Positions 23,401-63,238 of a stretch of 64,000 nucleotides of DNA are shown here, piece after piece. A program made the translations under genes and the position numbers. The notes beneath the pieces were generated by a model. It saw nothing but the letters and a program-made list of their open reading frames with translations. It was not told the origin of the DNA and did not search any database. The stretch comes from Cyanophora paradoxa CCMP329. Taxonomy: Eukaryota; Plantae; Glaucophyta. Numbering within the stretch: position 1 is the first letter of the stretch; the number at the start of each line of letters is the position of its first letter. The stretch covers positions 1 through 64,000 of the forward strand of contig QPMI01000409.1 in the NCBI GenBank assembly GCA_004431415.1, read 5' to 3'.

Positions 23401-24901
23401 TCCTTTCACAGCATCGTGCTTTTATGTTTCTTGTCAACACCCGTTGCAGGCATCGCTTGATCGTGGCTTTGGGCGATGCTTGGTTCTGAGGAAATACGCT
23501 GCATCTCTGAAGAAGTACGCAAATCAAACGTGCGCTGCTTGCTTCTTTCCACAGCGTGCTCCTCTGCCGCCTCATTCTATATGCAGTCTCGACCGTCTTG
23601 TTGGGCCTCCGGCTAATGATGATCCAAGGCCGATGAAAAAGATGCAGATCCTTGATGATGATGGCATATGTGCTCCGGGAGAGATTATTCACCCAGGCGA
23701 TGTCTACATCAACAAGCAAGTCCCTATGAACACATCAGACAACCTGGCGAATCCAGATGCACTCCCCGACTCGGGTTGCGATTTTTTTCCGTTTTCCTGC
23801 AGGCTGCGGCTCGTTCTGAAGGTTGCTTGGTTCTCCAGCCTACAAGCCACAGCAGATGACCTACAAGGGCAGTGTAGATGCCGTTGTTGACAAAGTGCTG
23901 GTTACCTCGAACGAAGAAGAACACGCACTCATCAAAGTGCTTGTCCGGAGCACCAGAAGACCTGAACTGGGCGACAAATTTTCCTCCAGGCATGGACAGA
24001 AAGGTTCGAGTTTTTCCCCCAGTGGCCCAGGACTCGAAGGGGATGTTCCAAGCTCACCCGTGCTCTTGTAGGAGTGGTTGGCTTGATCGTAAATCAAGCA
24101 GATCTGCCTTTTTCGGAACAAGGCATATGCCCGGATCTTATCATGAACCCCCACGGGTTCCCGTCTCGTATGACCGTTGGGAAAATGATTGAGCTTCTTG
24201 GTGGCAAAGCTGGCGTGCTTCAAGGGATGCAACGAGATGGCACTGTGCGCTGAATTATTTTCGATTGGGTGTCTACTGACATGTATAACAGGCTTTTGCC
24301 GGTGACTCGGTGGAGGAGCTAAGTCGGGTGCTTGTATCCCATGGATTTAATTACTCTGGCAAGGACCTTGTTACATCGGGCATCACTGGAGAGCCTGTGT
24401 CTGCGTACATATTCAACGGCCCCATCTACTACCAGCGATTGAAGCACATGGTGCTCGACAAGATGCATGCAAGAGCAAGGTGTGCTTCTCTCCTACGCCT
24501 GATTGCTGCATCTCTGATTCAACAATGCAGGGGTCCTCGCGCTGTCTTGACACGCCAGCCAACAGAGGGGCGCTCACGTGATGGTGGTTTGCGTCTTGGT
24601 GAAATGGAACGCGACTGCCTGATTGGCTATGGCGCATCGGCGCTTCTGTTGGAGCGCCTGATGATTTCGTCTGATGCGTTTGCCGTCACTGTCTGCCAGG
24701 TTTGCGCATTGTGGTCGAGCTTGCATGCCCTACCCTAATCCTGCGCAGGCTTGTGGACTGCTGGGGTACAATGGCTACTGCCAATACTGCCGCTCGGGGG
24801 AGAAGTGCTCCACTCTTAAGATCCCCTATGCGTGCAAGCTCCTCTTCCAGGAGCTTGGCTCTATGAACATAAACGTGAAGGTCACCCTTGCTGAGTTCTA
24901 G
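20429..24901 (+). CDS. POLR3B: RNA polymerase III second-largest subunit RPC2
   Basis: [101 protein letters not shown]. Confidence 0.97.
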
Positions 24902-25072
24902 AGTAGTTTCAACAGCATTTGAACACGAACGAAATAAAATGCAACGAACGTATATCTTGGTACATGTACAACAGGTGCCTGTGCCCGCGCATTGCGATTG
25001 AAATTGTCTTCGAATTGCCAAGTTGGCCTCATGGCCGATCGACAGGGCATGCATTAATAAACTTGAAAGATT

Positions 25073-25169
25073 GCTCTTTCTACGCTACGGGCGCGGCCGG
25101 ACCTCCTACCTACAGCGCTTTAACTGTACCCGTGCTGTTTGGGTGAGAGCATAACCCGCAGGGACTGGT
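25073..25169 (-). mobile_element. Fanzor-end element, copy 2 (terminal ~97 bp only)
   Basis: Reverse complement of the copy 1 3' end, beginning gctctttctacgctacggg; 171 bp after the RPC2 stop. Confidence 0.85.
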
Positions 25170-25176
25170 TCAGGGA

Positions 25177-25300
25177 CTGATTCTGATCGTAATCGCAACT
25201 CTGATTCTGATCGTAATCGCAACTCTGATTCTGATCGTAATCGCAACTCTGATTCCGATCGTAATCGCAACTCTGATTCTGATCGTAATCGCAACTCTGA
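25177..25300. repeat. 24-bp minisatellite (tctgattc[t/c]gatcgtaatcgcaac) x~5
   Basis: Tandem units seen directly; the same unit recurs at ~29980, ~35227-35311 and ~35828-35996. Confidence 0.95.
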
Positions 25301-25982
25301 TCCCAATGCTCACCCAAACGTAAAATCGCTCTCAAAAACGGTTGCTAATATGCAGCTAGCTAGTAAATAACGAGGACAAAAGCCCAGACGAGACAAGGTT
25401 TTCGCTTTCTGGCACAGGGGCCATAAAGTTCACGAGCTTTTCTTGTACCTCGTACCTGCAATAAGAAATCAGGGTAGTGTTGTGCATGACGAGAATGCGT
25501 GTCAGGCACCTCAGTTTGCGACCCTTGCTTGAGTTTGCGACCCTGTGCAGCGCGTGAGGCGGGCGGGGCCGCCGGGGAGGAGGAGGAAGCCGGTGCCGCA
25601 GGCGGCGGCCTGGCAGGCGTCGAGGGCGGCCTCCTCGCCCCGCCAGCGGCCCGGGGCCCCGGGCTCGGGCCCCGGTTCATGCTAGGCTAGGCAGAAGTCG
25701 CCCCTAGGCCTGCAGATTACGATCGCGATTAGCTATAGGGGTTGGGCGACAGTGAAGGTTGGAAGTCTTTGATTTCCGTGCACGTGGCATGCGCATGCGC
25801 ACCAGGCACCTTCAGGTGGGGCTACCGGATACTTCGTTCTCCCAGCTCTCAAATACCGGATACTACGGTGGCACCGCGGCAACTCCCAGCTCTCTCTCTC
25901 TCTCTCTCTCTCTCCCTCCCAGCTCTAGCGATCTAGAATTGATCAGGCAGGAAAGGGCGCCGCTGGCTCGAAAGACCGCGCC

Positions 25983-26804
25983 ATGCCTGGCCGCACGTAC
26001 AGCGCTTGGAAGCCAGTGACGAGCGGCAGCGTGCAGTTCCGTGCACTGCACGCGTTCACATGGAGCGCCGGTGCACAACACTTTCACTCGTTCGGCGGAG
26101 CTTCCGCGCGGACCGCGCTGAGAGGACAATCGGCGCGGTCTCCGCTGGCTGCGCCTTTGGCGCTTCGTCCAGCGCTCAGGACGGAGCGCCGAGCGCCGAT
26201 GCAGTTTTTCGTTGCATGCAGTGGAGGGCTGGAGAAGGTCAAGGTAATATCTGAGAATCGGAAGGCGCGTTTCAACTACGAGATCCTGGAGAAATACGAA
26301 GCGGGCATCAGTCTGACGGGGACGGAGATCAAGTCCGTGCGGTCGGGACGGATGAATATGCAGGATTGCTTCGCGCGCGTCACCAGAACCGGCGAAGGTT
26401 TGCCTGCGGTTCCTGGGCGGCTTCGCTTTGCGGAGCTCGCGAACCTAATTCGCTACGCAGTCGAACTTATCGGCATGCACATATCCCCCCACCACACCAC
26501 TGCCGCTTTCTTCAATCACGAAGCCAAGAGGAAACGTATGCTGCTCCTTCACAAACGAGAGATTCGGAAAATCAGGTCTCAGGTGCGTCTTCCAGTCCGC
26601 TGATCGACATCAACCTGGTCTAAGCCTGTATGTCAGGCTGAAACCAAGGGTCTCTCTCTCGTACCAACCAAGGCTTACTTGAAAGGTCAACTGTTAAAGA
26701 TTGAGCTAGCTGTAGCACGTGGCAAGAAGTTACACGACAAACGGGAGACTCTGAAGAAGAAAGCAGACAAGAGAGATGTGCAGCGAGCTCTGAAGAACTA
26801 CTAA
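25983..26804 (+). CDS. smpB: SsrA-binding protein SmpB, nucleus-encoded, probably plastid-targeted
   Basis: [70 protein letters not shown]; Ser/Ala/Arg-rich N-terminal extension; short introns. Confidence 0.93.
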
Positions 26805-26831
26805 GATGCAATTTCCTAATACAATTTGATT

Positions 26832-27246
26832 GCTCTTTCTACGCTACGGGCGCGGCCGGACCTCCTACCTCAGCGCTTTAACTGTACCCGTGCTGTTTGG
26901 GTGAGAGCGTAACCCGCAGGGACTGGTGCCCTGATGGAGAAAAGCCTTGAAGGGGATCGGAGCCTAGCGCTAGCTGGCTACGAACCGAGCAGGCGCTTCG
27001 CGTCCACGCCGGTGCCGTAGCGGATGAAGATGCTCCTGCAAGAGTACGATTACGATTGCGATCGGGCGGCGCTGGGAGGGGCGAGCCGGCCCTAGGCCTA
27101 GACGGAAAATTATGCCGTGGCTAGGCCGTGTCGGGACTAGGCGGGGGGAGCAGCGATTGTGTATAGGCGTGTATAGACACAACACGCACCGCGCGGCGCC
27201 GCCGTCGCGGTCCGCCCGGAAGCCGCACCCGGGGCGGCACTCGAAG
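26832..27246 (-). mobile_element. Fanzor-end element, copy 3 (~415 bp, includes FECRPGCGFRADRD codons)
   Basis: Near-identical reverse complement of ~19687-20091; starts 27 bp after the SmpB stop. Confidence 0.88.
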
Positions 27247-27799
27247 CCGCACCCGGGGCGGCACCCGGGGACGTGCGAGAATATTTTTAAACGTTTACGT
27301 ATAAGTATACGATTTGGGTAAAACGGAGTCGGCGATGGCAGAGGGGCGCCCGGCGCCCGGCAGACTAGACGGGGCCGGGTGGGGACCAGCAGCGCATGCA
27401 GGGGTATATGGGTAGGGCGAGTTAAAATAAACGTTCAAAGTTGCAATTAATAATTGGCTATTTGCTTTAATTTCGATTCTGATTACGTATATATACGTAT
27501 ACGCGCACGTACGATTATCGATATCGCTTTGGGTTGCAATTGACCATGCATATGAAAGGGGGGTTGGTTTTCACCGCGTACCCCGGGAGTCTGCCGCCCG
27601 GCAGCCGCCGTCCGCGCTTAGCACTTAGCTGCCGCCGTCCGCGCGAGCCGCTCACGGTTTGTTTCGACGCATTACGTCTGAGCCGACTTGCGGACGCAAG
27701 TTCTGCCTTGCTCTGCTGGCAAGCTGCGAGTATCTGGAATAGCGCGCCAATCCTTAGCTAAGTCCTGGTCTGAGCGCGTGAGGCCTGCGCTCGCGGAGT

Positions 27800-29686
27800 T
27801 ATGGCCAAATCCCCGAGCCCGGTGAACATAGCTGGAACCAAAGATTTGTGGCTCGTGGCACAAAGCAAGCTTGCTGAAGATGCGAACGGTGCGTGCCTGT
27901 CATGCCTTGCGCTCTCTGCTCGCGCCTTATTGGCCGCTGGTCCGCAGCAATGCTGCGCGTGGAAGGGCTAGCAGACACCAACGTGCTCTTTGTTGGGAGC
28001 AAAGGTGCAGGCAAGACTAGCCTGATTGGACGGTTCCGAGCGCAGAGCGCGTCGCTTGCAGTGAAAGGCGTGCTGTGTGCTGTTGTTCGTCGTTGTTCAA
28101 TTGCCATGAGCTCACCCGTGCACAGACGACCCAAAGCCGACTGTAGCTCTGGAGTATTCTCACAGATATCCTTTCTCATACCGCGCTTGCATACTGTTGT
28201 TCCGCTCGCGCCACGGACCCTTGATGGCACTGCGAACAGTTGGCAAGAAGGAGAACACAAATCTCAAGCAGGTGGCGCACATATGGGAGCTTGGTTAGTA
28301 CTCTGATATATTTAATCAGTAGTTTTATTTAGTCGCGATTTTTTCGCAGGAGGTGGTTTGCTCCTCGAGAAGCTCTCAGCCACAACTGTGAATCCAGAAA
28401 ATCTGCCAAACCTGGTCGTCGCCATTGTTCTTGATCTGAACGAGGTGAAACATTTTATTTAAGATTATTTGGTCATCGTTTAAGTGATGCGCATTGCAGC
28501 CGGGAAGCGTAATGGATACACTCGTTTTCTGGCTCCAGAAGATCCGGGGCCTGGTCAACGAGGCTGTAAAGAAGTTGCAGGACAGCGGCCAGCCTCTTCC
28601 AGAACGATTAAATGACCCGGTTGGCAAACTCTACGGCGCAGAACATGCCGACAGGTCCGCATCCACGTTGGTTTCGTCGATTGCTGGCCAGGCGCTCACG
28701 CAATCTAGAAATGCCGTCTGGCCCATCGGGGTTCCTGTGGTTGTCTTGGCAAACAAGTTTGATCTTTTTGCCAAAGTCGACTCGTGCGTTATCCGGAAGC
28801 TCAAGTGTGCCATTTTCCAAGACACGGCTCATAAGTGCTGCAGGAGCAAAGCAAAGACACTTGCAACGGCCATACGGTTTATGTGCCATTTGTATGGCGC
28901 AACTGTGCTGTTCACATCAATACAGCAGGAGGCCCAAGTGAAGGCGGTCTGTCTTATATCAAGCACTATCTTCCTTAGTTTGACCATACTGCAGTTTCTG
29001 GTATTGATGAACCATCACGTTTTCAAGACATCTGCGAGCAAGACTGTGGTCGTAGATCCTATGAAACCTCTCTACGTTCCTGTTGGTGGGCTGGGTTTTC
29101 GTTCATGCCCTTTCGTCCGCCGTAACATACTGAATGCGCGATTACAGGATCGGATACATTCCAGGCGATCGGTGTTTCACGGCCTCCCGTAAGTCCTGTA
29201 GAACTGGCGAGCTGGAGAGACGAAAATACGAAGCTCTGGCTTGGAGAAATGGCAAATGCGTTCAAACCCGCCGATCGCCAGGGTAATCAGTTTGTTTGAA
29301 CCATCAGTGATTCGCTGACTTTTCCGTTCAAAGAGCAACGAGGCAACTTCGATCCGTCCAATGCTAAGTACCGAGAGCCCACTGTTGACGAGCTCAGGGC
29401 TGTGAAAGAGTACGCAGAAGACTTCATTCATGGCTTCGGTGAAACTGACAATACTTGTTGTCTGCAGCAAACAGCTCCAGCTCTATCGCACTGAGTATGC
29501 TCTTTCTAAGCTACGTGATGATTCAGTCAACTAACCTTGTTGCTGTAGATATGACAAGAAGATCACTGAAGAAAGAGCGAAACTTGATCGTGCGATGAAT
29601 GAACAGCTGCAGAAGGTGCGGCGGGCATATTTGATAAGATTAATCTGACTTTCGTACAGGTTCGTGCAGCAGCACGCAAGAAGTAA
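27800..29686 (+). CDS. DYNC2LI1: Cytoplasmic dynein 2 light intermediate chain
   Basis: NVLFVGSKGAGKTSLI P-loop, AHIWELG, IGVPVVVLANKFD, IRFMCHLYGATVLF, VVDPMKPLYVPVG. Confidence 0.88.
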
Positions 29687-29705
29687 ACCTGCAGCACGCA
29701 AGAAG

Positions 29706-30024
29706 TTGCATTTGGACATATACTGTAATCGCATGTCCGGTTACAAGTGTGGGAATGTACACTGAGGCCTCCGCAGCCGCAGGCCCAGCCCACCCGCAAG
29801 CCAGGCCTTGAGAGTGGCCCCCTATAGATAAGGAGAGTAATGCGTCTCCCCGCGGACACTATGGGTCCCAAGAGCCCGTAGCGGGTCCTGCCACGTGCCC
29901 GTAGCGGGTCCTGCCAAAGTACCATTTGGACGAAAATTGGACGAAATCAGTTGGACGAAAGTTGGACGAAAGTTGGACGTCGTAATCGCAACTCTGATTC
30001 TGATCGTAATCGCAACTCTGATTC
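29706..30024 (+). repeat. Composite repeat: family B copy 2, 11-bp ttggacgaaa(a/g) tandem, and 24-bp minisatellite units
   Basis: Family B motif at 29706-29781; ttggacgaaa x4-5 at 29926-29980; cgtaatcgcaactctgattc units at 29980-30024. Confidence 0.75.
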
Positions 30025-30780
30025 ATGGACCCTAAGGTGCCTACCAACAGGTTCAGCCTCCTTAGTCGAACCCGGTGACACCGAAGTTTGCGGACAACAT
30101 TGCAATCTCCATCGTGATCGACCATACGCATCCAGCAGAACTCGAGACGAGAAATCAAATCTGCACGGCCAGCGCACGGCCGCCGCCGCCACCATAGAGA
30201 TGCTCGAATGAATAGCTGAAATGTTGGTTTTTTTTCGCGCTGCCATCCGGTACCGGTGCCTGCCGGCGGTACGTACACCGCTCTGCACCTGTCGCGTAAG
30301 CCCGCTCGAGCTCGGTTCAGCACGCAGAAGCGACCAAGCGATCGACACCGCGGCCGGGCGCCGAGGGCGGGCTAGGGGCGACGGTGAGCCCAAGGCGGCG
30401 AACGCGTCAGCGAGGACAACGCGAGGGACTAGGACGCCGGCAGACGTGCACTCCGGCGTCCCGCCCCTCGCCCCCGAACCTGCAGCGCCGCGCCGGCCCC
30501 CTCGCCCTCTGGTCCCTCGACGTCCGCGAGAGCGTCGCCGCGAGCGAGCTCGTCCTCGCCGCCGGTCCCTTCGCCGAGCACGCCGACTCCGCCGCCCCCG
30601 CCCTCCGCCTCCGCGCCCCCGTCGACTCCGCCCCGCTCCTCCCCGCCGCCCTCCCCGTCGCCTCTGCCGTGCGCCCCCCGCCCCGGCCCGCCCGCATACT
30701 CTTCTTCTTCTTCCGGCCCGCCTCGCTTCCGCCCGCTCCTGACCCGCCGGCGCGCCCGCCCCGCAGACCCTCCAGGTCCT

Positions 30781-31305
30781 GGGAAATCGCTCAGGTCCAG
30801 CGCGTCACCGCGCGGAGCTCGCTCCGGGCTCGCGAACCCTCCAGGGTGCTCTAGCGCGCCCTGAGCAGAGGACGCCGGCGCGGGCATGTCCCATGAGCTC
30901 TCCGGGCGCTCCCCAGGGCGCGCCGGCCTGTCCCAGGCGCCTGTTGGTCTGTCGTCGCGCCGGCCGGCGGACCGGCTCCCGAAACGGGATCAGCGATCCT
31001 CCCGATTGAAGCGCCGACCGCCTGCCCCCTCCTCCCGACTCTGGAAGCGCGATCGGCCTTCGCCGCCCCGCTCATAGCGTGAGCCGCGCTCCTCCCGATC
31101 GAAGCGCCGGCCGCCTGCCCCCTCCTCCCGACTCTGGAAGCGCGATCGGCCTTCGCCACCCCGCTCATAGCGCGAGCCGTATGCACGTAGTGTGTGCTGT
31201 ACATGTACCCGTAGACGCGTGTCACAGGCCGAGTTTGTTCAATTGCAGACGTGCACTCCGGCGTCGCGATGACGAACTCACCCGCGCTCGCGCTCACTGT
31301 TGAGG
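30781..31305. pseudogene. Chimeric patchwork of copied fragments (S4-gene exon, NPL4 upstream region, local 30441 segment, QTRT1 5' end)
   Basis: 30781-31178 = revcomp of ~44617-45015; 31175-31247 = revcomp of 235-300; 31245-31265 = 30440-30460; 31265-31305 resembles 31801-31841. Confidence 0.9.
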
Positions 31306-31804: not shown

Positions 31805-33558
<1,754 letters not shown>

Positions 33559-33839
33559 CCCGACGCTACCAATATCGTAGCAGAGCGAATTTCGGAAGGC
33601 AGTATTCAACAAAAACAGAAAACAAAGAAAAGATTTGACCAGGGCGGCCCGTTATTCGATGACGACCCATCCTTTGCACGACAGACTCTGAGAAGCCACC
33701 GAACAGGAGGGCCGCGGGCCCAAAGGTAGACAATTTGCAAGGCAGAGGACCATGCCATGATGGTGACGACCCACAAGATGATGATGAACAGCGGGCCAAA
33801 CATGCAAGGGGGTCTAGATTCATTACGTCCGTGGCATGG

Positions 33840-34160
33840 GGAGGTGCAAAACTCTCCTTGGGGGGGTGCAAAACTCCTGAGAGGGGGGGTGCAAAACTCC
33901 TGGGCTCTCCTTGGGGGGCCACACAGGGCCGCCGGGCTCGGCCGGCCAGTCCACTGGTGGGCTGGGCCCGCTGTCGCGGCGGCTGCAGGTTCATTACGTC
34001 TGTGGGGAGGTGCAAAACTCCTGGGCTCTCCTTGGGGGGCCACACAGGGCCGCCGGGCTCGGCCGGCCAGTCCACTGGTGGGCTGGGCCCGCTGTCGCGG
34101 CGGCTGCAGGGTACTACGGTACATTCCCACACTTGTACTATGGTAGCCCGGACCGTCGGA
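33840..34160. repeat. ~120-bp direct duplication and gtgcaaaactc repeats, ending in repeat family B copy 3 (-)
   Basis: 33888-33989 is nearly identical to 34009-34110; gtacattcccacacttgta at ~34119-34138. Confidence 0.75.
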
Positions 34161-34912
34161 CTTGAAGAAGAAGAAGAAGAGTATGTATAAGACACGCCCG
34201 AGCCGGTTGTGCGGTTTTGACGAAAGGCGAAGGACCCGAAGGCCCGAAGCACAATCGACAGTGAACCAACCAGACAAGGGTAGTGGCGGCGCAAACGCCT
34301 TACGGTCTACCATGTATGCCCCGGCGGTCCGGCGCTCATACACGCAGACACGGAAAGCAACCACAGACATCCCAATGCGGGCCTCTTCCTAATGCCGGCC
34401 TGGGGGAGTCCTGGTCACGACCTCACGTGTGAAACCTTCAGCCATCAGTCATGTCATCAGCCTCTTCGTCAGAGATAAGCACCATTGGGGAACCTGGGTC
34501 ATCAGCGAGATCCATAGGGGCAGCGGATGGGAGAGTTGGAGGAGGTGAAGGCCGCAAGCGTTTGAAAGAAACCTGAGGTGGGACACCAGGAATGTTATCA
34601 CCATGATCCAGAGCACCAGGGTCTGGAGAAGACATTCGACGACGCTTAGGCGGGACAATAGAAGGACTTGCGTTTTGAAGCTAAGAAGCTACCACTTGGG
34701 GCTCCTTCAAAAACTAGTTATCAATGAGTCAGTCTCCACCACATCGATTTGCCTATCCGCGGCCGGCTGAGCACTTGGATTGTCGGCCGCGAGCACAGCT
34801 AGTCAGAACAGCTAGTCCAGATGTCGCCGAGTCGCCGAGTCGGATGGTCGACGTCGTGGGTCGCAACCGATGATCTGGAATGCAGACTGGGATCTTCCGA
34901 TTTAGGCTGAAT

Positions 34913-35207: not shown

Positions 35208-35311
35208 TAATCGTTGGACGTCGACGTCGTAATCGCAACGTTAACTTAAGCTTAGTAACTCTGATTCCGATCGTAATCGCAACTCTGATTCCGATCGTAA
35301 TCGCAACTCTG

Positions 35312-35827
35312 GACGGTTTTTCGCTGTCGCCAATTTGTATGGCGGCCTTACGATCGGAGGCTTACGATCGGCCTTACGAATAATTCTCGAGAGTGACATC
35401 ACCATCATGACGTGGGCTTAATTCTGTAAGCAAATTTTAACCTCGTAAGCTTACAGCCGGGAGCGAGTTTTGCCAAATTCACTCCCGCGCGTAAGGCTAG
35501 GAGCTAGCGCTGTAGCCTACGTCTGTAAGCTGGTGCTGGCGGCGCTCGGGTTTGCCGAGGGCGTTGATGCGCCAAAGTGTGCGCGCATGCATACGCAGCG
35601 CCGTACAGCCTTGCCGAGCTGCTTCAGCACGCTAGAGCGGCGTTTGACGCTACGGCGCTGCCCTCAACGGTCACTTAGGGGGTACCGTTACCGCCGCGCT
35701 AAGACTCGACTGGGCTCGTCCACGCCCAAGATTTCACGGCGACGACGCCTTACTGCAGGAAATGACATCATAGTTTTTTCCAGCGTTAATTTCCGCTCCG
35801 TGCGTAAGCCGACAGCGAAAAACCGTC
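35312..35827. mobile_element. MITE B, related to MITE A (18-bp TIRs), inserted in the 24-bp minisatellite
   Basis: TIR gacggtttttcgctgtcg / cgacagcgaaaaaccgtc; flanks ctg / atg; shares atttgtatgg and catcatagttttttcc with MITE A. Confidence 0.85.
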
Positions 35828-35996
35828 ATGATTCCGATCGTAATCGCAACTCTGATTGCGATCGTAATCGCAACTCTGATTCCGATCGTAATCGCAACTC
35901 TGATTGCGATCGTAATCGCAACTCTGATTCCGATCGTAATCGCAACTCTGATTCCGATCGCAACGTTAACTCTGATTCCGATCGTAATCGCAACTC
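35828..35996. repeat. 24-bp minisatellite x~7
   Basis: tctgatt(c/g)cgatcgtaatcgcaac tandem. Confidence 0.95.
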
Positions 35997-36018
35997 TTTC
36001 GAAATTTCGAATTTCGCT

Positions 36019-36201
36019 CAATAGGAGGTATCTCCGGAGGAGAGGAGAAAAGCTTGACATGGCAGGTGCTCACGGATACTGGATTTTCTTCATGCTCTTG
36101 TTTCACACATGCTGTTCTAGGTCGTGGATCAGTGCACAGCTCTACTGCCTGAGAATAAGGTTCCCGGGCACCACTGATTTTTTTCTTACTATTTCACCAA
36201 C
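36019..36201 (+). pseudogene. Duplicated internal QTRT1 fragment (exon-intron-exon-intron)
   Basis: Near-identical to ~32844-33027 including introns, with a few substitutions. Confidence 0.9.
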
Positions 36202-38047: not shown

Positions 38048-39286
38048 TGATGCGAGCGGGGTCCACGAGCTCCAAAACCCCAAAAATTCCTGTACGCGAC
38101 CCGCCCAGGCCGCTGCTTCTGAAAGAAGCTGCGACAGTGTACGACAAGCCTTTCCTGACGCTCTCGGCGCTCGTAGGCAACCGACAGGCGGATCCCAAAG
38201 AACCCCAAGTATGAAGGTGTCCGCGCGAAGGTCGACAGCGGCATGACCATCGGTTCGAAGAGCGCGAGCTAAGTCTCTGTTACTGCTTGTCCTGATTCCG
38301 AGCGCAGACAAGCTGCGAGAGCAGGAGTCATCCGGTGAGCTGGTTTCCGCCGTTTGCGCGTGCTCTCACCTTCTATGCAGCGAATAAGAGCAGGAAAGAT
38401 GAAATCTTCAAGCGCATAAAAGGTTCGGGGTCTCCACCCCTGCCGGGCGCTGGAGCTAAGAGTGGAACCCGCCCCCTCAGTCTCTACACTCGGATCTCTG
38501 ATAGATGCCGAGACGGAGGAGGAGAGTGTGTACTCACTGGTAGACACTGAGGGTGGACCTTCGAGCACGACCAGTGAGCAATGCGGATTCCACCCATTGG
38601 TCGTTTTTTTCACTGCATCGCCAGAAACTAGCACACATGATGCTACCTCAACTGGCCAGAGCTCTGGGCAGTACAACAAAAAGTATCTGCTACTAGATGT
38701 GCGGGACAAAGACGAATATGACAAATGCCACATTAGAACAGGTTCGCCTCGCGCCACAATTCAAAGTTGTCTATCCACACGTTTAATTTTCGCTTTCCAG
38801 CCATGTCTCACCCTGCCGCCAAACTTAACCAAATCAACGCATTCACTGCTGACATGATACGCTACGTGAGTCAACCATGACTTTCTGTTCTCCATCTGTT
38901 GTACTGAGATGAGCATGCATCCAGAAAAATCAGAAGGAGCGTATCATGGTCATCTATGATGATGATGAGAAGGCATGCCACTGTCCCTTGCCTTTCTTCC
39001 TCACATTCCTGATCCTAATGCTACGTATCAGATCGCTGCGGCTGCAGCAACAATGCTGGCTGAGCGGGGCTTTGAGAACCTATACATGCTCACTGGAGGT
39101 TCGTTGCATCTATTCCAGCCCCCCAGGTAGCCTGAGTCTCACTGTTAATGTTGTTCAGGTCTGTTCAAGTTCGGGGAGAAGTCTCCAGACCTGCTCGTTG
39201 GCGACCTCCCCTCTCGCCCTCCCCCATCTCGCTCTTCTATCGGCACCTCCGCCTCCATGCGCTCCACCATCACCACCCGCCTCTGA
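38048..39286 (+). CDS. CEP41: Centrosomal protein CEP41-like (rhodanese domain)
   Basis: PKNPKYEGVRAKVDSG, YLLLDVRDKDEYDKCHI, IMVIYDDDEK|IAAAAATMLAERGFENLYMLTGG. Confidence 0.8.
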
Positions 39287-39619: not shown

Positions 39620-41221
39620 ATGGACAAGCTCAAAGCGGAGATCGAGAGGAAACGGAAGCTCGTGGAGAGCGCCGCAGCTGCGAGCGGCAACGCGGGCAAG
39701 AAATGGGTGAAGCGCGCCGACCTGGAGGCGGAGAAGCTGAAGCAGCTGGAGGCCGAACGGCCGCGTGCGCGATGCCGCGTTCGCCTAGCCACTGCATTCT
39801 GCTTACGCGTCACCAGGGTCGTCCCCGAGCCCACCGCCCAAGCCGAGCGATGCAGGTGCTGAATGCGCGACGGGCGATTGGACGCGGAGCACTGCTAACG
39901 AGCACCCAGATGCGCGAGCTTCGCCGCCGCCGGAGGCGTCCGGCCAGTCCAAGAACGATGCCGCAGACGGGGTGCGTTGCAGAACGAGTGCCGCGCTGAT
40001 TTCGAGCACTGCGCTGAGCATGCGCGCATTCAGGAAGAGCAGAAGGCTAAGCTACCCAAGCCTGATGTCATCAGGAGGCTGAGAGCTCGGGGCCAGCCCA
40101 TCACGCTTTTCGGCGAAACGGACAGTGCGCACCGCCCTGCGGCTCTGTTCGCAAGCACAGCATACCTGAATACACTTCGCAGTTCAGCGGGAAGAGCGGT
40201 TGAAGCTCGTAGAGGCTACGATTCCTGAACTGATGGAGGGGCAGAAGAACGATATGCAGCGGCTGCTCGAAGAGCAAGAACAAGGGGAGCGCTCTGGCAA
40301 AGGTGCGCTATTTTGCCAAACCATGCACATGCGCTTAAATATTGAGATGCGTTCAGAGAAATCTGGCTCGGACAGCGACAGCGATGACGACGCGCGGAAG
40401 CGGGGGAAGAGGGTCGGGGGCAAGGCCAGTGACTCGGAGAGCGGCGCTGGGGGCCCCTCTGGCGTTGAAAAGGAGCTCAAAGACGAAGAGTACATCGTGC
40501 AGTACCTGAAGGTGCACGAGTGTGCTTTCGCCCTCTTTTTAGAGGCTGACATGCGCCCAGCGCATGCTCCGAGAGTGGGAGGAGAGTTTAGACTCAAGGC
40601 CTGACGCAGTCAAGAAGACGGCCCAGGGCAAGGCAAGGGTGCTGACCAGGCTCGAAATCATCGTTTGATTTGGCCTGCAGGTCGACACTGCAACACAGAA
40701 GCAGTGCTACAGGTATCTGAAGCCATTCTTCAGTGAGATGCGCAAGCGGGTGCGCATTCTTCGACAGGCTATGACTGTGGGCTAATGGCTTTACAGCAAT
40801 CGCCGCCCGACATTGTTCGGTCGGTTCGCTCAATCATAACGCACATGGAGAATCGGGAGTATGTGAAGGCGCACGAGGACTACATGAAACTCGCCATTGG
40901 TGTGTCCCTCCGAATTTTTCAAGTGGGATGCCGGGATGAATGAGCCTACTGGCAGGCAATGCGCCCTGGCCCATGGGTGTGACGATGGTTGGTATCCACG
41001 AGCGCTCCGCCCGGGAGAAGATTCACTCAAACCAAGTCGCTCGTGCGCCCCTCCACCCATACTTAGCGCATACGGTATTTTCTCGTGCCCCCTTGCGTCT
41101 CATGGTGGCCGCAGACGTGCTAAACGACGAGACTCAGCGGAAGTACATCCAGTCCGTCAAGCGTGTCATGACATTCGTGCAGAAGAAGTACCCAGCTGAC
41201 CCATCCCGTTCCGTTTGGTAG
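39620..41221 (+). CDS. PRPF18: Pre-mRNA splicing factor 18
   Basis: [75 protein letters not shown]. Confidence 0.95.
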
Positions 41222-41468
41222 TTTCCACGTGGAAATCGGCAGCAAGGAAAGCGATGAGCGATTTGGCTGCAAGTGTGGGATGTTCACTGCAGCAAAGGCG
41301 CGGGCCCAGCCCACCGGTACCAAGCTCGCGCCCACCCAGCCGGGACTTACATTGAGGGGAGTACTGAGCCGCCACGTGCGGACACTGGCTACAGGTGCCC
41401 GCACGTGGGTGTGGCATCGCAACTCAGGGCAGTGGAGGCATTAAGGCTCGGGGCGGCAGAGATCGTCT

Positions 41469-43896: not shown

Positions 43897-44173
43897 GGTG
43901 GAGAATTTGAGCGCGCGAGAGGGCGGTGCTGGGGCCGATTCGTGCCGCTTTGAAGTGCGCAAGAGGCCGGTGCTGAGGCGAAGTGCCGCTTTAATGTCCG
44001 AAAGTGTTCGCAGCGCCGTGCTGACTGTGGCCGCTCGGCAGACTGGGGCGCACGGGAGGCTGGGCGCGGGGGAAATCGTTTGGCGCCAAGATGTTTGAAC
44101 TATGCGATTGTACCCAGGTGAAATCGACTTCAGCCCCGTCCCGGATCAAGGCCGCTCGCAGCCCTCTAGGCGA

Positions 44174-45558
44174 ATGGATTCCGCGTTTTGCGTGCTAGGG
44201 GCAGCGCCAGCGGCGGTCTTGACCTACCTTCGGCCCCACCGCCGAGATGCTGCGTGCTGTCCCACCGGTACCGCCGAGACGCAGCACCAGCGCGCTGTCG
44301 CTAGCTGGAGCAAGCCGAGCACGCGCGATCAGGGCCCCGGGGGCCGGCGGACCGGGGGCGATCAGCGCGGCCCTTGGCGCTCAGGTGGGCAGCAGCGCTC
44401 GAGCGAAGGTCGCCAGCGCTTCAGCCGTGACGAAAGCGGCTTCCCGCGGCGCTCCGAGCGGGACGGAGGACGCGGATCACGCGGGGAGGAGAGCGGAGGT
44501 CGGCGCTTCGATCGGGAGGAGCGCGGCTCGCGCTATGAGCGGGGCGGCGAAGGCCGATCGCGCTTCCAGAGTCGGGAGGAGGGGGCAGGCGGCCGGCGCT
44601 TCGATCGGGAGGAGCGCGGATCGCGCTATGAGCGGGGCGGCGAAGGCCGATCGCGCTTCCAGAGTCGGGAGGAGGGGGCAGGCGGCCGGCGCTTCGATCG
44701 GGAGGAGCGCGGCTCGCGCTATGAGCGGGGCGGCGAAGGCCGATCGCGCTTCCAGAGTCGGGAGGAGGGGGCAGGCGGTCGGCGCTTCAATCGGGAGGAT
44801 CGCGGATCCCGTTTCGGGAGCCGGTCCGCCGGCCGGCGCGACGACAGACCAACAGGCGCCTGGGACAGGCCGGCGCGCCCTGGGGAGCGCCCGGAGAGCT
44901 CATGGGACATGCCCGCGCCGGCGTCCTCTGCTCAGGGCGCGCTAGAGCGCCCTGGAGGGTTCGCGAGCCCGGAGCGAGCTCCGCGCGGTGACGCGCTGGA
45001 CCTGAGCGATTTCCCTGCCGGTGTCGTGGAGTACACGAGCTCGGCCCCCTCCGAACGCAGCGGAAAGCTGGTCAACGCGCTCTCCAAGGCCCAGATCGGA
45101 AGGTGCACTTCGCTGACGATGTTTCCAAGCAAGCCATGACGCCCTGCGCTTGCTTGCATACGCAGTATGGAAGTTGTGGAACTTCTTGTCGCAAAAGGGC
45201 GCGTGCACGTGAACGGATCGCCTGTCACTGACACGGCTGCCATCGTGGAAGTGACTGATCGCATTGTGCGCGGATGTGCCCTCGATCCTTCACGTGTACA
45301 CGCTTAGACTTGCAAAGGTGGTGAACGGCGAGTTCCTAGAGCCGGAGAGGGACGAGCCCGATAACGATGACGAGGATTACGACGACGCGGACGACTGGGA
45401 CCCTCGAAAGTGCGGTTTCTTCCCGTTCGCCTGCACTGTGGAGGACCGACTGACACGGTCTTCTCTGCCCCCATGCAGCCGCGGGAAGCTTCCGAAGGAG
45501 TACTCGTCAAGCATCGATGGGGGCTTCTTCAAGCGGAAGCTCATGGAGGTCAAGAACG
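44174..45558 (+). CDS. Organelle-targeted S4-like RNA-binding protein with RGG/RE-rich repeats
   Basis: MDSAFCVLGAAPA transit-like start; 93-bp repeat; S4-like KLVNALSKAQIG..VAKGRVHVNGSPVTD..VTDRIVVNG. Confidence 0.6.
44495..44810 (+). repeat. 93-bp (31-aa) coding tandem repeat x~3.4
   Basis: GGRRFDREERGSRYERGGEGRSRFQSREEGA repeated at 44495, 44588, 44681, partial at 44774. Confidence 0.95.
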
Positions 45559-45665
45559 GGACTTCGGGCTCGAGCTAAGTCTCTAAAAATCCCTGCCGCC
45601 ATCGGCCAGTGCAGATCTGGATTCATGTATGCGCATTCAATAGCTATGGTTTCCAATTTCGGTTT

Positions 45666-58263: not shown

Positions 58264-58740
58264 CTAGCCCTGGTTCGCGTCGACAGCGCGCTCAGACGCT
58301 GCGAAAGACCGGTTGACGTGGATGCACACAGAAGACGCAAAGAAGAGCGCACTGTTGTAATTGAGCAGCTTATCGATGAGGTCCACATGTGTCAGGAGCA
58401 TTCTCCTGCAGCAATACCGCTTGAGCCCGAGCGCGTCGAGGGCGTCGCTGTGCCGGCGCTCGTCAGCCCTCAAAGAGATCCGAGCTAAGCGGAAGAGCTC
58501 ACCCCTCGGTGTAGTCCGCCTGCAGCAGCCCGAGGAAGGTGTCCCACTTGTTGCCGATCACCTGCACGGCGCTACTTCAGTGCACGCAACGCGCCTGCAA
58601 AGCGCATGCTCCTCATCTCCTCCGAGGAAGAGCTGGTTCGACAGCGCTCGCTCGCCCGCTAGCCCTCTCTTCCGTCCGCAAGCCAGCCGCATGCCCGCGC
58701 GGACCTTTCCGCAGGTGAAGCAACGAATTGGGATGATCAT
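58264..58740 (-). CDS. POLR2L: RNA polymerases I/II/III subunit RPB10
   Basis: [12 protein letters not shown]|VIGNKW...[31 protein letters not shown]. Confidence 0.97.
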
Positions 58741-58922
58741 CGTCCCGCGACGTGGCGTGGAGCCGCGACGCGTCCGACCTTTCTCGGCCTGTACCCGTCC
58801 GGGAGAAGAAAAGTCGCCGAATTCGCCACAGAACGCCAGCCAGCGCATACCACGCACCCTCGTAGAGCAAGTAGCTGTTTAAGCAGATTCGCCGTCGGCA
58901 GGAGGAGGCGCCAACCAGCGTG

Positions 58923-59869
58923 ATGCTGAAGGCGAAAGACGTCGCGCGGTCCTGGAAGATCTTCGTCGGCGACACCGTGCGCTCCGCTGCTAATGCGCAG
59001 CTCTTGATGTGCCGGACGCACGCTCGCTGAGCTGCGCCGCTTAGGTGCGCATCCGGACGGGCGTCGATGCTGGCAAAGTAGGCCGCGTCCAGCGCCTCGT
59101 GCGGGACGATAACAAGGTCGTGGTCGAGGGAGTCAACCTGGTGCGCCGCTCGCCTCAATTTCGCGGCGGGACAGCGGCCGATCCCCGCCGCAGATCTACC
59201 GCGACGCCATGACGGCGGATGGAAAGCCGATGGCTGTGCCGGTGCCGCAGCCCGTTCACTACTCCAATGTGGAGCTCTGGGATCTGTAAGCACGCGCTCT
59301 TCGGGGTCCGCACATTGCATCTGATGCGCTATGCGCAGAGTGAAGCAAAGGAGGATAAAATCGGCCCTGGTCAAGGACGAGAAGACCGGTAGGCTCAAAC
59401 GGATCAACAAGATCTCGGGCGAAGAGGTCCCGATGGATATCCCCCGGGGAGAAAAGCTCGAAAGTCCGTTGGTGTCTTCATCTTTGCAAATCCCCCGCTC
59501 ACAACTTCACGCAGAGGGCCCGAAGGACACGGAGCCAGCAAAAGTTGCAGAAATTACCTATGATCCCACAGCAGAAGCGGTCTTCCATCCTGCAGTACCA
59601 AGAGTTCTGCCCCCTGCCCTTAGAGTCTTCCAGCCACGCACAAAATGAGTTAGCGCCGAGAGCCAATAATCATGATTATCGACTTTGTATTCGGGTGGGT
59701 TCGAGAATCTGGAAACAAACTTCATCGCGATCGCAACGGATCGGAAGCTTACGAGTTCGAAATTCAGCCTGGGCCTGCACCTGTAGCCAGTGTCCGCTGG
59801 GAGGCGCATTACTCCCCTCGGAGGGCCACTCATGATCTGGGCTCGGGCAGGCCAGCGCCAGCTTGCTAA
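58923..59869 (+). CDS. MRPL24: Mitochondrial ribosomal protein uL24m
   Basis: WKIFVGDT, DAGKVGRV, NKVVVEGVNL, VHYSNVEL, GPKDT (KOW-containing L24). Confidence 0.8.
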
Positions 59870-59939
59870 TGGGCTGTGCTTGCGGCGAGTTGCAATATTA
59901 ATTTAGTTTGTGTCCACATGCTACACGATCTTACGACAA

Positions 59940-60831
59940 CTAAGTGATCCTTGTCTTTCGAGCGGGGGTTTTTGAGCTGGTGCTCGCCGACTTCCGCTTC
60001 TGCTTCGCCGAGGAAACTGGTGCTGCTGGCCACGGACTCTTCGGTTTCAACCCTTCCACCTGGGCGACCCGCGGGAGGCCCTTGGGCACGGTCACATCAT
60101 CCGCATCTTCATTTCCGATCACCTCGTAGACATCTGTGCACCAATTCAGGGCCTCCCATGTAAGCGCAAGCGCTCGTACCGATTAGGCCTGCAAGCGGGT
60201 CTTGCAGCGAATAAGCGGCCTCCCCGTTCTCGGCGCGTTTGCCCGTGAACGTTATGAAGGAAGAGCATGCGTCGGGGCCCAGTACAGCGACGTGGAACTG
60301 CGGCTGGGTTGAGCGCGCGCGATTAAGTAGCAAAGCGCGTACGCAGCGCACCGTTCGCGAGCCCACGCTGATCGTGGGCTGAGGCCCAGGACCGGAGAGA
60401 TCGATCTTCAGCGCCTCGATTGCCGACGGAGGAACCTGCGAAGTCGTGGTGGTCGGCTGCGGTCGAGCTCGACCCGCCGGGCGCTCGGCGTGCTGGCGCG
60501 CACACCTCGGGCGGCGCGCGGATGAGGTAGCGAGCCCGGCCCATGCAGATAAGCGGCAAGGCGGTGGTGGGCGGAGTGATCGGGCGGTGACCGTGGTGGT
60601 CAGACCGCGGTGAGAGAGAGCAGCCAATGAGATATCCCAGGACTCCAATCCAAATCGTGGTTGTGAGCTCCAAGCCGGTGGACCGGTGGTAACCGGGCTG
60701 TAACCCGGTTGTTCCGTTGGAGGGTACACTACTTTCTTCCCAATTTGAGCCGGCGGCAGCCGACGCACTAGTTACGGTTGCAGGGGCTTCAGCGCGCGGC
60801 CGCGTGAAGCGATCTTCAGCCTTTTCTGCAT
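59940..60831 (-). CDS. Hypothetical multi-exon protein
   Basis: Exon-like pieces LKIDLSGPGPQPTISVGS and FITFTGKR with a Lys-rich tail; family not recognised. Confidence 0.4.
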
Positions 60832-60916
60832 CCGCACCGACGGGAGCAGCAGCCGAATTGGAAACCGCGTGGGCAGCGGACTTCTGAGAGAGCAGGCAGA
60901 GCGAGCTCCTTAAAAC

Positions 60917-62862
60917 ATGACGACAAGGACGAGGATCGCCTCAGACCATCACATCATGGAGAGGCGGCGGCAGGAGTCGCAGCGCGAGTGCGTACAACTT
61001 TTAGAGGTCGCCGCCGCGCGTCGCTCACTTTTATGCTGCACAGCTACTACATCAACCATGCCAAGGCCGTGTTTGACCTCTCCACCCGAGCGGAGTGGGA
61101 GGCGAAATCGGAACACGTTGCTATTGCGGGCGAGGTTCAGAAACGCCTCGAGCAGCTCCGTTTCGAGCGGCAAGTCGGTCTAGATGAGCGCCGGCGCAGG
61201 TGCGAGCCCGCCAGCGCCCAGGCAGCCCTCATAGCTAAAATGCCCCAATGCCAGGCTCGCGGAGCTGCTTGCCCAGGAGGAGGCGGAGTACCGCGGAGAG
61301 ATCAACGCGAGCGTGGAGACGACTGAGCAGCGTCGCGAAAGAAGTGATTGCCTCCCCGCACGGCAGCTGTGGCCCACAAGCTAACCGAGCGCAAGTGCGC
61401 ACGCGTGCCCTGGAGCTCCGTGAGAAGCGCGAGCAGGAACGTCGAGCCTTTGTCGAAGAGAAGTGTGCCGCTTTCTCCCTTCGCTTGTGCGCCCTCTGAC
61501 TGGTCCTAGGCTGCACCAGCAGTGGCGCGAATCGTGCGATGTTCTTCGGCCGTACGAGAGCAACCAGTTCCTTCTGCAGTGCGTTGCAGAGCGAGATATG
61601 CAGCTCATCGACAAGATCCTCCGTAACAAAGTTGTCGAAGAAGGTCCAGTTCCATGTCTTGTTGCGTTCCGCTTGATTCTGATATGCTTGCCGCAGAAAA
61701 CAAGTACTTCACACAACAGTGGGAGCAGGAGCGCCTCAAGAAGGAGGCACGGGCCAAGAAGGACGAGGACCGTGTCAAGGCGCTTAACGAAGAGATGAAG
61801 CGCATGCTGGAGACCCAACTTGACGAGCTGAACATGCGTCGGGCGGAGGAGAAGCGCCTTCGCGAGGAGGATGCGGCCCTGCAGAAGGAGAAATGGGCGC
61901 TCGAGCAGGAGGCTGCAGAGCGGCGAGATATGCAGGAGCTTGCCGCCCGCAAGCAGCGGGCGCACAACCTGCAGGCTTTTAATCTGGAGTACCGGAAGCG
62001 GCGTTTTGAAGAGAAGCGAAAGGAGCGTGAACAGGATCTTGGTCAGCTTTTGTGCATCTGGTTTTATAATATTCACCGCTTTGATGAATGCTGCAGCCCT
62101 CATCAATGCTGTTCTGGAGCGTGAAAAGCTGGAGGAGGGCCGAGAAATGGAGAAGAAGGTGCGCCTGCTTTTCAAAATGAAGCCTTTCTACTCATCTCAT
62201 GTTTCATGCAGAGGCAACTCAGAGAAGAGGCAATCGCCTTCCGGAAGTATCTCGAACAGCAGATGAAGCTGGAGGTTGAAGGCGAGGCGGAAATGAACCG
62301 CCTTCTCCAGCTCGAGCAAGAGAAGGCCTGGCAGGTCGGCTCTAATGACTCACTGTCGCAAGGTGTACACATGTCTAAAATGGGGAGTAATTCGCAACAG
62401 AAACGCCAAGCAGAGTGGGCTAAGGAAGAGGAGATGCGGAATCGCTTGATGCGGGAGGTTCTGGAGGAGCGCAAGCGGCAAATCGAGGAGAGGCGGGAGC
62501 AGATTCGCCGTCGGCAGGAGGAGGCAGTACTTGAACGCCAGCTGCTAGAGGCTGAGGTCCAGCGGCTCTCGGCAGTGGAAGCTAGCAAGGAGGTCTTCGC
62601 TAAACAGGGCCGGCTGGACAACCAGGCATTCATCGTTCAGCAGGTTCGATGCTTCATGCAGTTCCTGGGTCACCAAAATGCTAATTCATGTTCACTGCAG
62701 ATTAAGGAACACGAGGATGAAAGGGCACGTCGCCGTGAGGAGGAATCCAGGGCAACTGAAGCAGTTGCCGCTGCTGAAGCTGCCTACCAAGCGAAGCTTG
62801 CATTGGAGCTTCAGCGTGGTGCTCAGATGATTAGCTATGGCCGCCGGGCAACCCGCAGGTGA
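60917..62862 (+). CDS. CFAP53: Cilia/flagella coiled-coil protein, CFAP53-like (trichoplein family)
   Basis: LDERRR, LELREKREQERRAFVEEK|LHQQWRESCDVLR, E/R/K-rich coiled coil. Confidence 0.7.
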
Positions 62863-62897
62863 TCCTGAGGCATTGTTCACACATGCTATGATCTAGT

Positions 62898-63238
62898 GCT
62901 CTTTCTACGCTACGGGCGCGGCCGGACCTCCTACCTCAGCGCTTTAACTGTACCCGTGCTGTTTGGGTGAGAGCGTAACCCGCAGGGACTGGTGCCCTGA
63001 TGGAGAAAAGGGGATCGGAGCCTAGCGCTAGCTGGCTACGAACCGAGCAGGCGCTTCGCATCCACGCCTGTGCCGTAGCGGATGAAGATGCTCCTGCGAG
63101 TACGATTACGATTGCGATCGGGCGGCGCTGGGAGGGGCGAGCCGGCCCTAGGCCTAGACGGAAAATTATGCCGTGGCTAGGCCGTGTCGGGACTAGGCGG
63201 GGGGAGCAGCGATTGTGTATAGGCGTGTATAGACACAA
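62898..63238 (-). mobile_element. Fanzor-end element, copy 6 (~341 bp)
   Basis: Same terminus, near-identical to copy 3; 35 bp after the CFAP53 stop. Confidence 0.88.

Follow-up and report, generated by a model that had tools for sequence, protein, structure and literature searches.

Why do repeated copies of a Fanzor 3' end lie just behind the stop codons of host genes in Cyanophora paradoxa CCMP329, and does the DNA at their boundaries serve as guides? The question arises from positions 1–64,000 (forward strand) of contig QPMI01000409.1 in assembly GCA_004431415.1, a 64-kb stretch hereafter called the window. An initial annotation had placed Fanzor-end copies behind host stops and offered three explanations: targeting of terminator or 3'-UTR DNA, a replication-strand bias, and domestication for TldR-like RNA-guided regulation. 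Here, we find that the anatomy holds (the 3' end of a Fanzor/TnpB element, cut off at one fixed boundary and convergent behind stops), while TldR-like regulation finds no support.

5'-truncated copies with a fixed boundary

The window contains seven Fanzor tail-end copies that are 97–99% identical to one another, with the exception of c8 at ~74%:

c1, 19644–20091, + strand: the longest copy and the only sense-oriented one, with the last two Fanzor exons, an intron and the tail
c2, 25169–25073, − strand: 97 nt, tail only, 171 bp from the RPC2 stop
c3, 27267–26832, − strand: ~436 nt with a zinc-finger exon, intron and tail, 27 bp from the SmpB stop
c5 (copy 4 of the initial annotation), 35068–34913, − strand: 156 nt, in a repeat-rich spacer
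c6, 39519–39343, − strand: 177 nt, between a CEP41-like stop and the Prp18 ATG
c7, 63238–62898, − strand: 341 nt, behind a CFAP53-like stop
c8, ~45850–45666, − strand: diverged subfamily at ~74% identity, with added stem-loop insertions

All copies share a fixed 3' end, where the terminal GTAGAAAGAGC is found in 7/7 and the next base is A in 6/7. Their 5' ends are ragged, giving lengths of 97, 156, 177, ~185, 341, 436 and at least 448 nt. The first flank bases after GAGC are biased toward A-W-T-C; the flanks are otherwise unrelated, with mutual similarity at chance level (P 0.12–0.15). Copies c2, c3, c5, c6, c7 and c8 lie on the − strand and c1 alone on the +, in agreement with the earlier claim that six of seven copies are − and copy 1 is the exception.

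The Fanzor identity of the tail rests on its coding remnant. In c1, an exon ending ..TCGKINYGLGSKRVFECRPGCGFRADRDGGAAR is followed by an intron, the residues SIFIRYGTGVDAKRLLGS and a stop, and then by a 3' non-coding tail of ~140 nt that runs to the fixed end at 20091, the whole lying between the stop of an amino-acid transporter (~19337) and the RPC2 ATG (~20506). Both c1 and c3 encode ..CGKINYGLGSKRVFECRPGCGFRADRDGGAAR, a CxxC..CxxC zinc ribbon with a DRD motif, and the 34-aa exon matches PF07282 (Cas12f1-like TNB) with an E-value of 1.9e-4 and 22 bits, under the 26.3 cut-off. Each copy reaches no farther than the last two exons, and the whole window contains no Fanzor ORF, no left end and no full-length copy. 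No Fanzor gene, dead or alive, adjoins any copy; the gene upstream of c1 is the transporter (Pfam Aa_trans).

Conserved blocks are common to the main tails and c8, in which one stem is longer. Compared with shuffled sequence, the tail folds with no extra stability on either strand (z −1.2 to +0.5), a result that lends no support to the special hairpin terminator proposed earlier; covariation is slight (3/22 predicted tail pairs), and no Rfam family matches the tail.

One copy retains a signature of its integration. A 12-bp target-site duplication, GCACTAGATCAT, flanks c7 at 62888–62899 and 63246–63257 (p<1/300); it starts with GCA, and its 5' member follows TTCAA with no TTTT target, a weak test at n=1. 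The 5' junction of c7 carries 7 nt of filler and a TGTGT microhomology. At definable boundaries the other six copies show no significant duplication; a 24-bp satellite array (25173–25355) abuts the 5' side of c2, and c3 has a partial internal duplication at its 5' junction. The window contains no Rep gene, and the tail bears no marked terminal hairpin. Copying may initiate at the right end and be resolved by end joining, as proposed for the CRe-1/2/3 elements discussed below.

Docking behind stop codons

Five − strand copies present their fixed end to a + strand stop 27–171 bp away, and in all of them it is the host coding strand to which that end is joined. The stops are those of RPC2 (TAG 24899–24901; Pfam Rpb2_7 matched to profile position 86/87), 171 bp from c2; SmpB (TAA 26802–26804; Pfam SmpB matched to 143/143), 27 bp from c3; a putative CEP41-like gene (TGA 39284–39286), 56 bp from c6; an S4-domain protein (TAA 45576–45578), ~87 bp from c8; and a CFAP53-like coiled-coil gene with only a weak TPH match (TGA 62860–62862), 35 bp from c7. 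Re-measurement confirmed the reported siting, facing the host gene, and four of the gaps to the base; for the S4-domain gene docking stands and the earlier 107 bp becomes ~87 bp, within a range of 79–107 bp that depends on one splice. The ragged end of c6 lies 100 bp before the Prp18 ATG (39620), in a spacer of ~156 bp before insertion, and c8 occupies a 503-bp convergent spacer opposite a − strand ChlH/CobN gene with its stop at ~46082. The fixed end of c5 lies 1354 bp behind the QTRT1 stop (TGA 33556–33558; Pfam TGT), matching the ~1.35 kb reported, with no verified gene end nearby. Since c1 and c5 are both undocked, placement is not strict.

We evaluated docking against a null model in which each copy falls uniformly, in either orientation, inside its own spacer, with the 171-bp cut-off set post hoc. 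Under this spacer-aware null, the probability that at least five of seven copies face a stop within 171 bp is 0.003–0.014. Fisher's method, applied to relative positions, yields P 0.03 when only the five docked copies are combined and 0.08 when all seven are included. Orientation by itself is non-significant (P 0.11–0.125; 6/7 on one strand is 0.125, two-sided). The C. paradoxa genome is reported to have 25,831 genes, a mean spacer of 770 bp, 9.2 introns per gene and a mean intron of 86 bp (PMC6704402), and against the genome-mean gene number and spacer the same docking yields P 3e-4 to 1e-6. As spacers measured in the window are merely 0.16–1.4 kb, the docking statistics are weaker than they seem. 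The pattern is real and nominally non-random, with moderate evidence from the window.

A second repeat family and a probable intronic relic

Three further features bear on how specific docking is to Fanzor tails:

c4, 29495–29548, − strand: probable relic, a 54-nt GT-AG intron of a dynein light intermediate chain (DLIC) gene
B1, 29742–29870, + strand: family B repeat, head 55 bp behind the DLIC stop (29684–29686)
B2, 41265–41400, + strand: family B repeat, head 43 bp behind the Prp18 stop (41219–41221)

The DLIC intron starts with GTAT followed by GCTCTTTCTAAGCTACG, a 16/17 match to the antisense tail terminus in exact register (shuffle p 0.0005), and by this sequence match it is a probable relic of a Fanzor tail. 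It is antisense to its host gene, and counting it puts 7/8 copies on the − strand.

Family B is a short, hairpin-headed repeat unrelated to Fanzor tails. Because it docks behind the DLIC and Prp18 stops, docking is not Fanzor-specific: at least one repeat family unrelated to Fanzor shares the niche behind stops in the window, and of the nine + strand gene ends from 17 to 64 kb, seven have some repeat within 171 bp.

Weighing the explanations

Docking has the look of something that mobile repeats generally do in so compact a genome, rather than of guide-RNA regulation. We give about an even chance to the reading that the copies are dead, non-autonomous, 5'-truncated, one-ended Fanzor right ends retained where short spacers border a gene's 3' end. 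Their siting behind stops would then follow mainly from the very short spacers (770 bp mean): exons and the promoter side of spacers would be intolerant of insertions, so that persistence would fall to the 3'-UTR and terminator side, and convergent orientation would spare host mRNA the element's splice sites and its signals for omegaRNA/Fanzor processing, a putative cost of sense copies. Several observations speak against such survival. The docked copies are young (97–99% identity), leaving little time for slow attrition; at distances of 27, 35 and 56 bp, three of them probably sit within a host 3' UTR, where DNA is not neutral; and c6, whose ragged end is 100 bp short of the Prp18 ATG, indicates that promoter-side insertions are sometimes kept. 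The c4 relic is also the sole intronic copy, though introns make up about one third of non-exonic DNA (P ~0.06).

That same youth counts toward active targeting, a possible but doubtful alternative in which one-ended elements would favour transcription-termination zones as integration sites in a strand-specific manner. Such integration might be cued by the non-template strand displaced in terminator R-loops, by nucleosome-free 3' ends or by contact with 3'-end-processing factors, with priming at GCA or A-W-T-C microhomology; the flank bias after GAGC and the GCA that begins the c7 duplication are consistent with such priming. The 5/7 docking at both sets of P values, the constant joining of the fixed end to the host coding strand and the like docking of family B also fit. 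However, c1 (sense) and c5 (1354 bp off) break the rule, orientation by itself reaches only P ~0.1, the cut-off is post hoc, spacers of 156–983 bp put any intergenic copy near a stop, and no tRNA or Rfam gene in the window offers a cue. Nor does the window contain a + copy behind a − strand gene end, which leaves gene-relative orientation confounded. The earlier proposal of terminator or 3'-UTR targeting is therefore possible, with in-window data that fit 3'-side survival in short spacers equally. The confounding extends to a bias of chromosome strand: the docked hosts are all + and the docked copies all −, so the replication-strand option is fully confounded with gene strand. Single-stranded DNA transposons of the IS200/IS605 type follow replication direction, and integration into single-stranded DNA at forks would put copies on one strand, with the apparent facing of genes arising because local genes are co-oriented. 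The 6/7 copies on the − strand (7/8 with c4) and the + strand of every docked host agree with this, but 6/7 is only P 0.125 (two-sided), c1 lies on the opposite strand in the same cluster, closeness to stops is left unexplained, and family B lies head-first behind + genes in + orientation. We regard a strand bias as very improbable.

Domestication would make the docked tails 3'-UTR or terminator modules, sources of antisense RNA against an active Fanzor, or a TldR-like guide library. The gaps of 27–56 bp probably put tails inside host 3' UTRs or at their ends, host read-through would yield RNA antisense to the omegaRNA region, and conserved blocks persist between the main copies and the diverged c8. 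The copies are nonetheless young, multi-copy and variable in length (97–436 nt, c2 being down to 97 nt of tail), have no adjacent Fanzor gene, fold at shuffled level with little covariation and no Rfam family, and share their niche with family B; the features that define TldRs are absent (PMC10705468). A guide match to a copy's own flank is generic, and the sequence just before such a target is the end of the element itself and not a TAM. To our knowledge, the guide in every TnpB/Fanzor element is whatever DNA adjoins the right end outside the boundary, and calling the guide antisense to the 3' end of the host only restates the geometry. We find no support for a regulatory role of the flanking guides. 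The TldR-like option of the initial annotation is unsupported in view of the missing Fanzor gene, the young multi-copy repeats and the docking of family B, and we consider domestication in any form improbable.

Implications

If docking reflects mere insertion tolerance, it belongs to ordinary transposon population biology, and its main use is as a caution for annotating Cyanophora 3' UTRs and for reading guides into Fanzor remnants. A strand-specific aim at gene ends, if true, would amount to a new rule for choosing integration sites, with a bearing on the one-ended copying of Fanzor-carrying elements, a question standing since 2013, and would account for unrelated repeat families sharing one niche in this alga. 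In its broadest form, which we advance tentatively and think rather unlikely, a one-ended element class comprising Fanzor tails and at least one hairpin-headed family integrates strand-specifically into termination zones, tens of bases past stops. The cue might be the coding strand left single-stranded in terminator R-loops, or the machinery that processes 3' ends, and the by-products would be rewritten host 3' UTRs and occasional new introns, as the DLIC relic suggests. We know of no description of such target choice for eukaryotic DNA transposons.

Comparison with known systems

The closest likeness is to CRe-1/2/3 of C. reinhardtii, non-autonomous Helitron2-type elements with Fanzor1, in which the 3' terminus is nearly always intact, 5' truncation is frequent, target-site duplications measure 7–19 bp and 5' junctions occasionally carry extra sequence, features interpreted as one-ended copying that begins at the 3' terminus (Bao & Jurka 2013, PMC3627910). 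The Cyanophora copies share the fixed 3' end, the ragged 5' ends and, in c7, a 12-bp duplication with filler. They differ in that neither a Helitron Rep gene nor terminal hairpins nor a TTTT target was seen, in a duplication that begins with GCA, and in their siting behind stop codons, of which that paper makes no mention.

The layout of a coding end with zinc ribbon and last RuvC segment, a non-coding tail and a sharp boundary is that of TnpB/Fanzor right ends with omegaRNA, of the IS200/IS605–IS607 type (PMC11423790). In contrast to those elements, only the tail is present in the window, where nuclease gene, left end and TAM are all absent, and an omegaRNA fold is supported here no further than sequence conservation. 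In TldR systems a full-length protein whose RuvC site has decayed is encoded next to its gRNA, transposon ends are missing, and the guides match TAM-flanked promoter targets conserved across loci (PMC10705468). The sole shared idea is a TnpB-type guide adjoining and complementary to a host gene region: unlike TldRs, the Cyanophora copies are accompanied by no protein gene of their own and their remnant still has its DRD motif, and they number seven in 64 kb at 97–99% identity, share a sharply defined transposon end and include one with a target-site duplication.

Gene-proximal transposon populations under selection also show orientation bias, for example an antisense excess within transcription units, and the copies here likewise mostly oppose their hosts. 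As in those populations, they occupy DNA that is transcribed or flanks transcribed regions, with none in exons and few on the promoter side. What sets the Cyanophora copies apart is that the bias is found in the first 30–170 bp behind stops, in sub-kilobase spacers and among young insertions.

Truncated Fanzor tails in the window

A repeat search, together with a BLAST comparison of the 16-20.4 kb segment with the whole window, located seven copies of the 3' end of a Fanzor (eukaryotic TnpB) element.

Tail copies
19644-20091, + strand: c1, sense, between the transporter stop (~19337) and the RPC2 ATG (~20506)
25169-25073, - strand: c2
27267-26832, - strand: c3
35068-34913, - strand: c5
39519-39343, - strand: c6
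~45850-45666, - strand: c8 (74% identity)
63238-62898, - strand: c7

All seven share a 3' boundary at one nucleotide (...CCCGTAGCGTAGAAAGAGC, the next base being A in 6/7), hereafter the fixed end, and their 5' ends are ragged, lying 97 to at least 448 nt from it. The longest copies retain the two final exons of a TnpB/Fanzor protein, reading ..CGKINYGLGSKRVFECRPGCGFRADRDGGAAR, a retained intron, then SIFIRYGTGVDAKRLLGS and a stop; the first of these remnant exons matches PF07282 (Cas12f1-like TNB, E 1.9e-4), and a non-coding tail of ~140 nt lies 3' of the coding remnant. Because the rest of the gene was found in none of the seven copies in the window, and the upstream neighbor of c1 is an amino-acid transporter gene, all copies are dead tails. 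An exact scan of metagenome contigs with the 23-nt tail end returned 0 matches. The elements are truncated Fanzor-element tails, belonging to an already known kind.

Tails dock behind host stop codons

The window is nuclear DNA of a glaucophyte alga, gene-dense and with many introns, at a GC content of 50-72%, and no part of it resembles human sequence. Five tails are docked, their fixed ends lying 27-171 bp behind the stop codon of a host gene.

Host stop codons and gaps to the fixed end
24899-24901, + strand: TAG of RPC2 (Pfam Rpb2_7 match to 86/87), 171 bp to c2
26802-26804, + strand: TAA of SmpB (Pfam SmpB match to 143/143), 27 bp to c3
33556-33558: TGA of QTRT1, 1354 bp to c5
39284-39286, + strand: TGA of a CEP41-like gene (no Pfam match; name from the initial annotation; open frame and stop confirmed), 56 bp to c6
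45576-45578, + strand: TAA of an S4-domain protein, 87 bp to c8 (79-107 by choice of one short intron)
62860-62862, + strand: TGA of a CFAP53-like coiled-coil gene (weak TPH match, E 0.028; name from the initial annotation; open frame and stop confirmed), 35 bp to c7

The gaps that the initial annotation gave for RPC2, SmpB and the CEP41-like and CFAP53-like genes were reproduced from the stop coordinates, as was its placement of c5 ~1.35 kb after QTRT1; behind the S4 protein the docking was confirmed with a gap of 87 bp, the 107 bp given earlier being the top of the 79-107 range. Docked copies are oriented toward the host gene as claimed, the fixed end facing the stop in 5/5, and c1 is indeed exceptional in its sense orientation before the RPC2 ATG. 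A - strand ORF at 33609-34388 was rejected as a gene beside c5, having no Pfam match and an uninformative atlas score of 0.76. Exact protein look-ups of the ThyX ORF, the dynein light intermediate chain (DLIC) model and the CFAP53-like and SmpB ORFs returned no record.

The C. paradoxa genome has 25,831 genes with CDS-to-CDS spacers averaging 770 bp, and 9.2 introns per gene with a mean length of 86 bp (Price et al. 2019, PMC6704402); since spacers are so short, an intergenic copy anywhere will lie near some stop codon. Occupied spacers include RPC2 to SmpB (ATG 25983; 1081 bp), SmpB to DLIC (ATG 28224; 1419 bp), the convergent S4 protein to ChlH/CobN spacer (stop ~46082, - strand; 503 bp) and CEP41-like to Prp18 (ATG 39620; 333 bp, 177 bp of them c6). 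Before insertion the last would have measured ~156 bp, into which both the 3' UTR of one gene and the promoter of the next had to fit.

If each copy is placed uniformly, and in either orientation, inside the spacer where it lies, the probability that at least five of seven copies face a stop within 171 bp, a cut-off set post hoc, is 0.003-0.014. Fisher's method on relative positions gave 0.03 for the five docked copies and 0.08 for all seven, orientation by itself gave P 0.11-0.125, and a null built from genome-mean figures gave P 3e-4 to 1e-6. The docking pattern is real and nominally non-random, and the evidence from the window by itself is moderate.

A second repeat family docks alike

Family B is a dispersed repeat unrelated to Fanzor, ~130-150 nt long, with two short hairpins and the head TACAAGTGTGGGA(A)TGTACACTG.

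Family B copies
1709-1760, + strand: copy
29742-29870, + strand: B1, head first, head 55 bp behind the DLIC stop (29684-29686)
34135-33990, - strand: copy
41265-41400, + strand: B2, head first, head 43 bp behind the Prp18 stop (41219-41221)
59814-59700, - strand: copy

The copies behind DLIC and Prp18 indicate that docking is not specific to Fanzor, and of the nine + strand gene ends from 17 to 64 kb, seven have some repeat 27-171 bp behind the stop. Docking at 3' ends is a placement bias that appears general for mobile repeats of C. paradoxa.

A probable relic tail in a DLIC intron, and neighboring repeats

Exons in the window were searched singly. A 234-aa ORF matched a single relative, the dynein light intermediate chain (PF05783) eukprot tig00020554_g10797.t1, and all eleven exons of the latter align at 100% to + strand positions 28224-29683. 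In this gene a GT-AG intron of 54 nt (29495-29548) begins GTAT followed by GCTCTTTCTAAGCTACG, which agrees with the antisense tail terminus at 16/17 positions and in exactly the same register (shuffle p 0.0005); the intron is flanked by TATG/TATG. From this resemblance the segment is probably a relic tail fragment (c4), antisense to its host gene like the docked copies; such a fragment may have turned into, or taken the place of, the intron. A longer extent for c4 (29499-29620) was ruled out by overlap with DLIC exons, and only the 54-nt intron is kept as the probable relic.

Arrays of a 24-bp satellite (GATCGTAATCGCAACTCTGATTCY) lie beside several tails, at 25173-25355 (directly adjoining c2), 29966-30044, 35233-35335 and 35781-36030. 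They resemble a hexamer motif in the tail's intron (19868-19893), a related motif also occurs at ~19430-19500, and the arrays may belong to the complete element. Last-exon DNA of QTRT1 (32844-33026) is repeated directly 3 kb downstream at 36019-36201 (183 bp, 98% identical), adjoining a satellite array, and could reflect gene-fragment capture or local duplication. An inverted repeat with 93-bp tandem units (30781-31179 and 44617-45015; 399 bp, 99% identical) has its second arm within a long ORF rich in GC (44099-45136), which lies upstream of the exons for the S4 domain.

Explanations for the placement

On the best reading, in which we place about as much belief as doubt, elements enter spacer DNA and those insertions that strike exons or promoter-side DNA are later lost. 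The convergent orientation would be favored because the host mRNA then contains neither the splice sites nor the omegaRNA-processing signals of the element. A serious rival, which we consider somewhat improbable, is that termination zones are actively targeted in a strand-specific way; the docked copies are young, their gaps to the stop are small and family B docks alike, all of which speak for it. Pol III or structured-RNA genes were rejected as its cue, tRNA and Rfam scans of the window giving no match. Guide-directed homing predicts mutually similar new flanks, and the 30-nt flanks past the fixed end (the would-be guides) argue against it, their similarity being that of shuffled or random low-GC sequence (summed pairwise score, P 0.12-0.15) with a bias limited to the first four bases, A-W-T-C.

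Domestication is unlikely. The initial annotation had offered, as one of three options, that each guide, complementary to a host 3' end, allows TldR-like regulation, or that a hairpin acts as a termination element. Every TnpB/Fanzor right end has, by its very construction, a guide that matches the neighboring host 3' end, and in situ the element's own end sits in front of this 'target', at the spot requiring a TAM. A TldR is marked by a nuclease-dead protein of full length with a gRNA beside it, by a promoter target that is conserved and TAM-flanked, and by lost transposon ends (PMC10705468), and none of these features was found at the tails here. A special hairpin or terminator was likewise unsupported, the tail folding with the stability of shuffles on both strands (z -1.2 to +0.5); the alignment fold showed slight covariation (term +0.57, 3/22 pairs). 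Strand bias, slightly less probable still, draws on docked hosts that are all + and docked copies that are all -, so that gene strand is fully confounded with chromosome strand in the window. The initial observation is confirmed and its interpretation supported in part, guide regulation being unsupported.

Tail junctions and mode of copying

A clear target duplication was found in c7 only (GCACTAGATCAT at 62888-62899 and 63246-63257, p<1/300; GCA-anchored), and examination of c1, c2, c3, c5, c6 and c8 gave none that was significant. The position of this duplication places the c7 insertion 23-35 bp past the CFAP53-like stop, most likely within what had been the 3' UTR. The 5' junction of c7 shows TGTGT microhomology together with a 7-nt filler. 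Some 60 bp farther out than the 5' target duplication, at 63317-63334, there is an interstitial telomere-like (TTAGGG)3, a motif for which shuffles expect 0 occurrences.

Retention of the intron indicates that the copies do not derive from spliced mRNA. Copying would start from the right end, with end-joining closing the 5' side; involvement of Fanzor has been raised tentatively only (Craig 2023, PMC10288648). Such copying would correspond to the 'one-ended' behavior of the Chlamydomonas Fanzor elements CRe-1/2/3, which have intact 3' ends, 5' truncation, TSDs of 7-19 bp and extra 5' sequence (Bao & Jurka 2013, PMC3627910).
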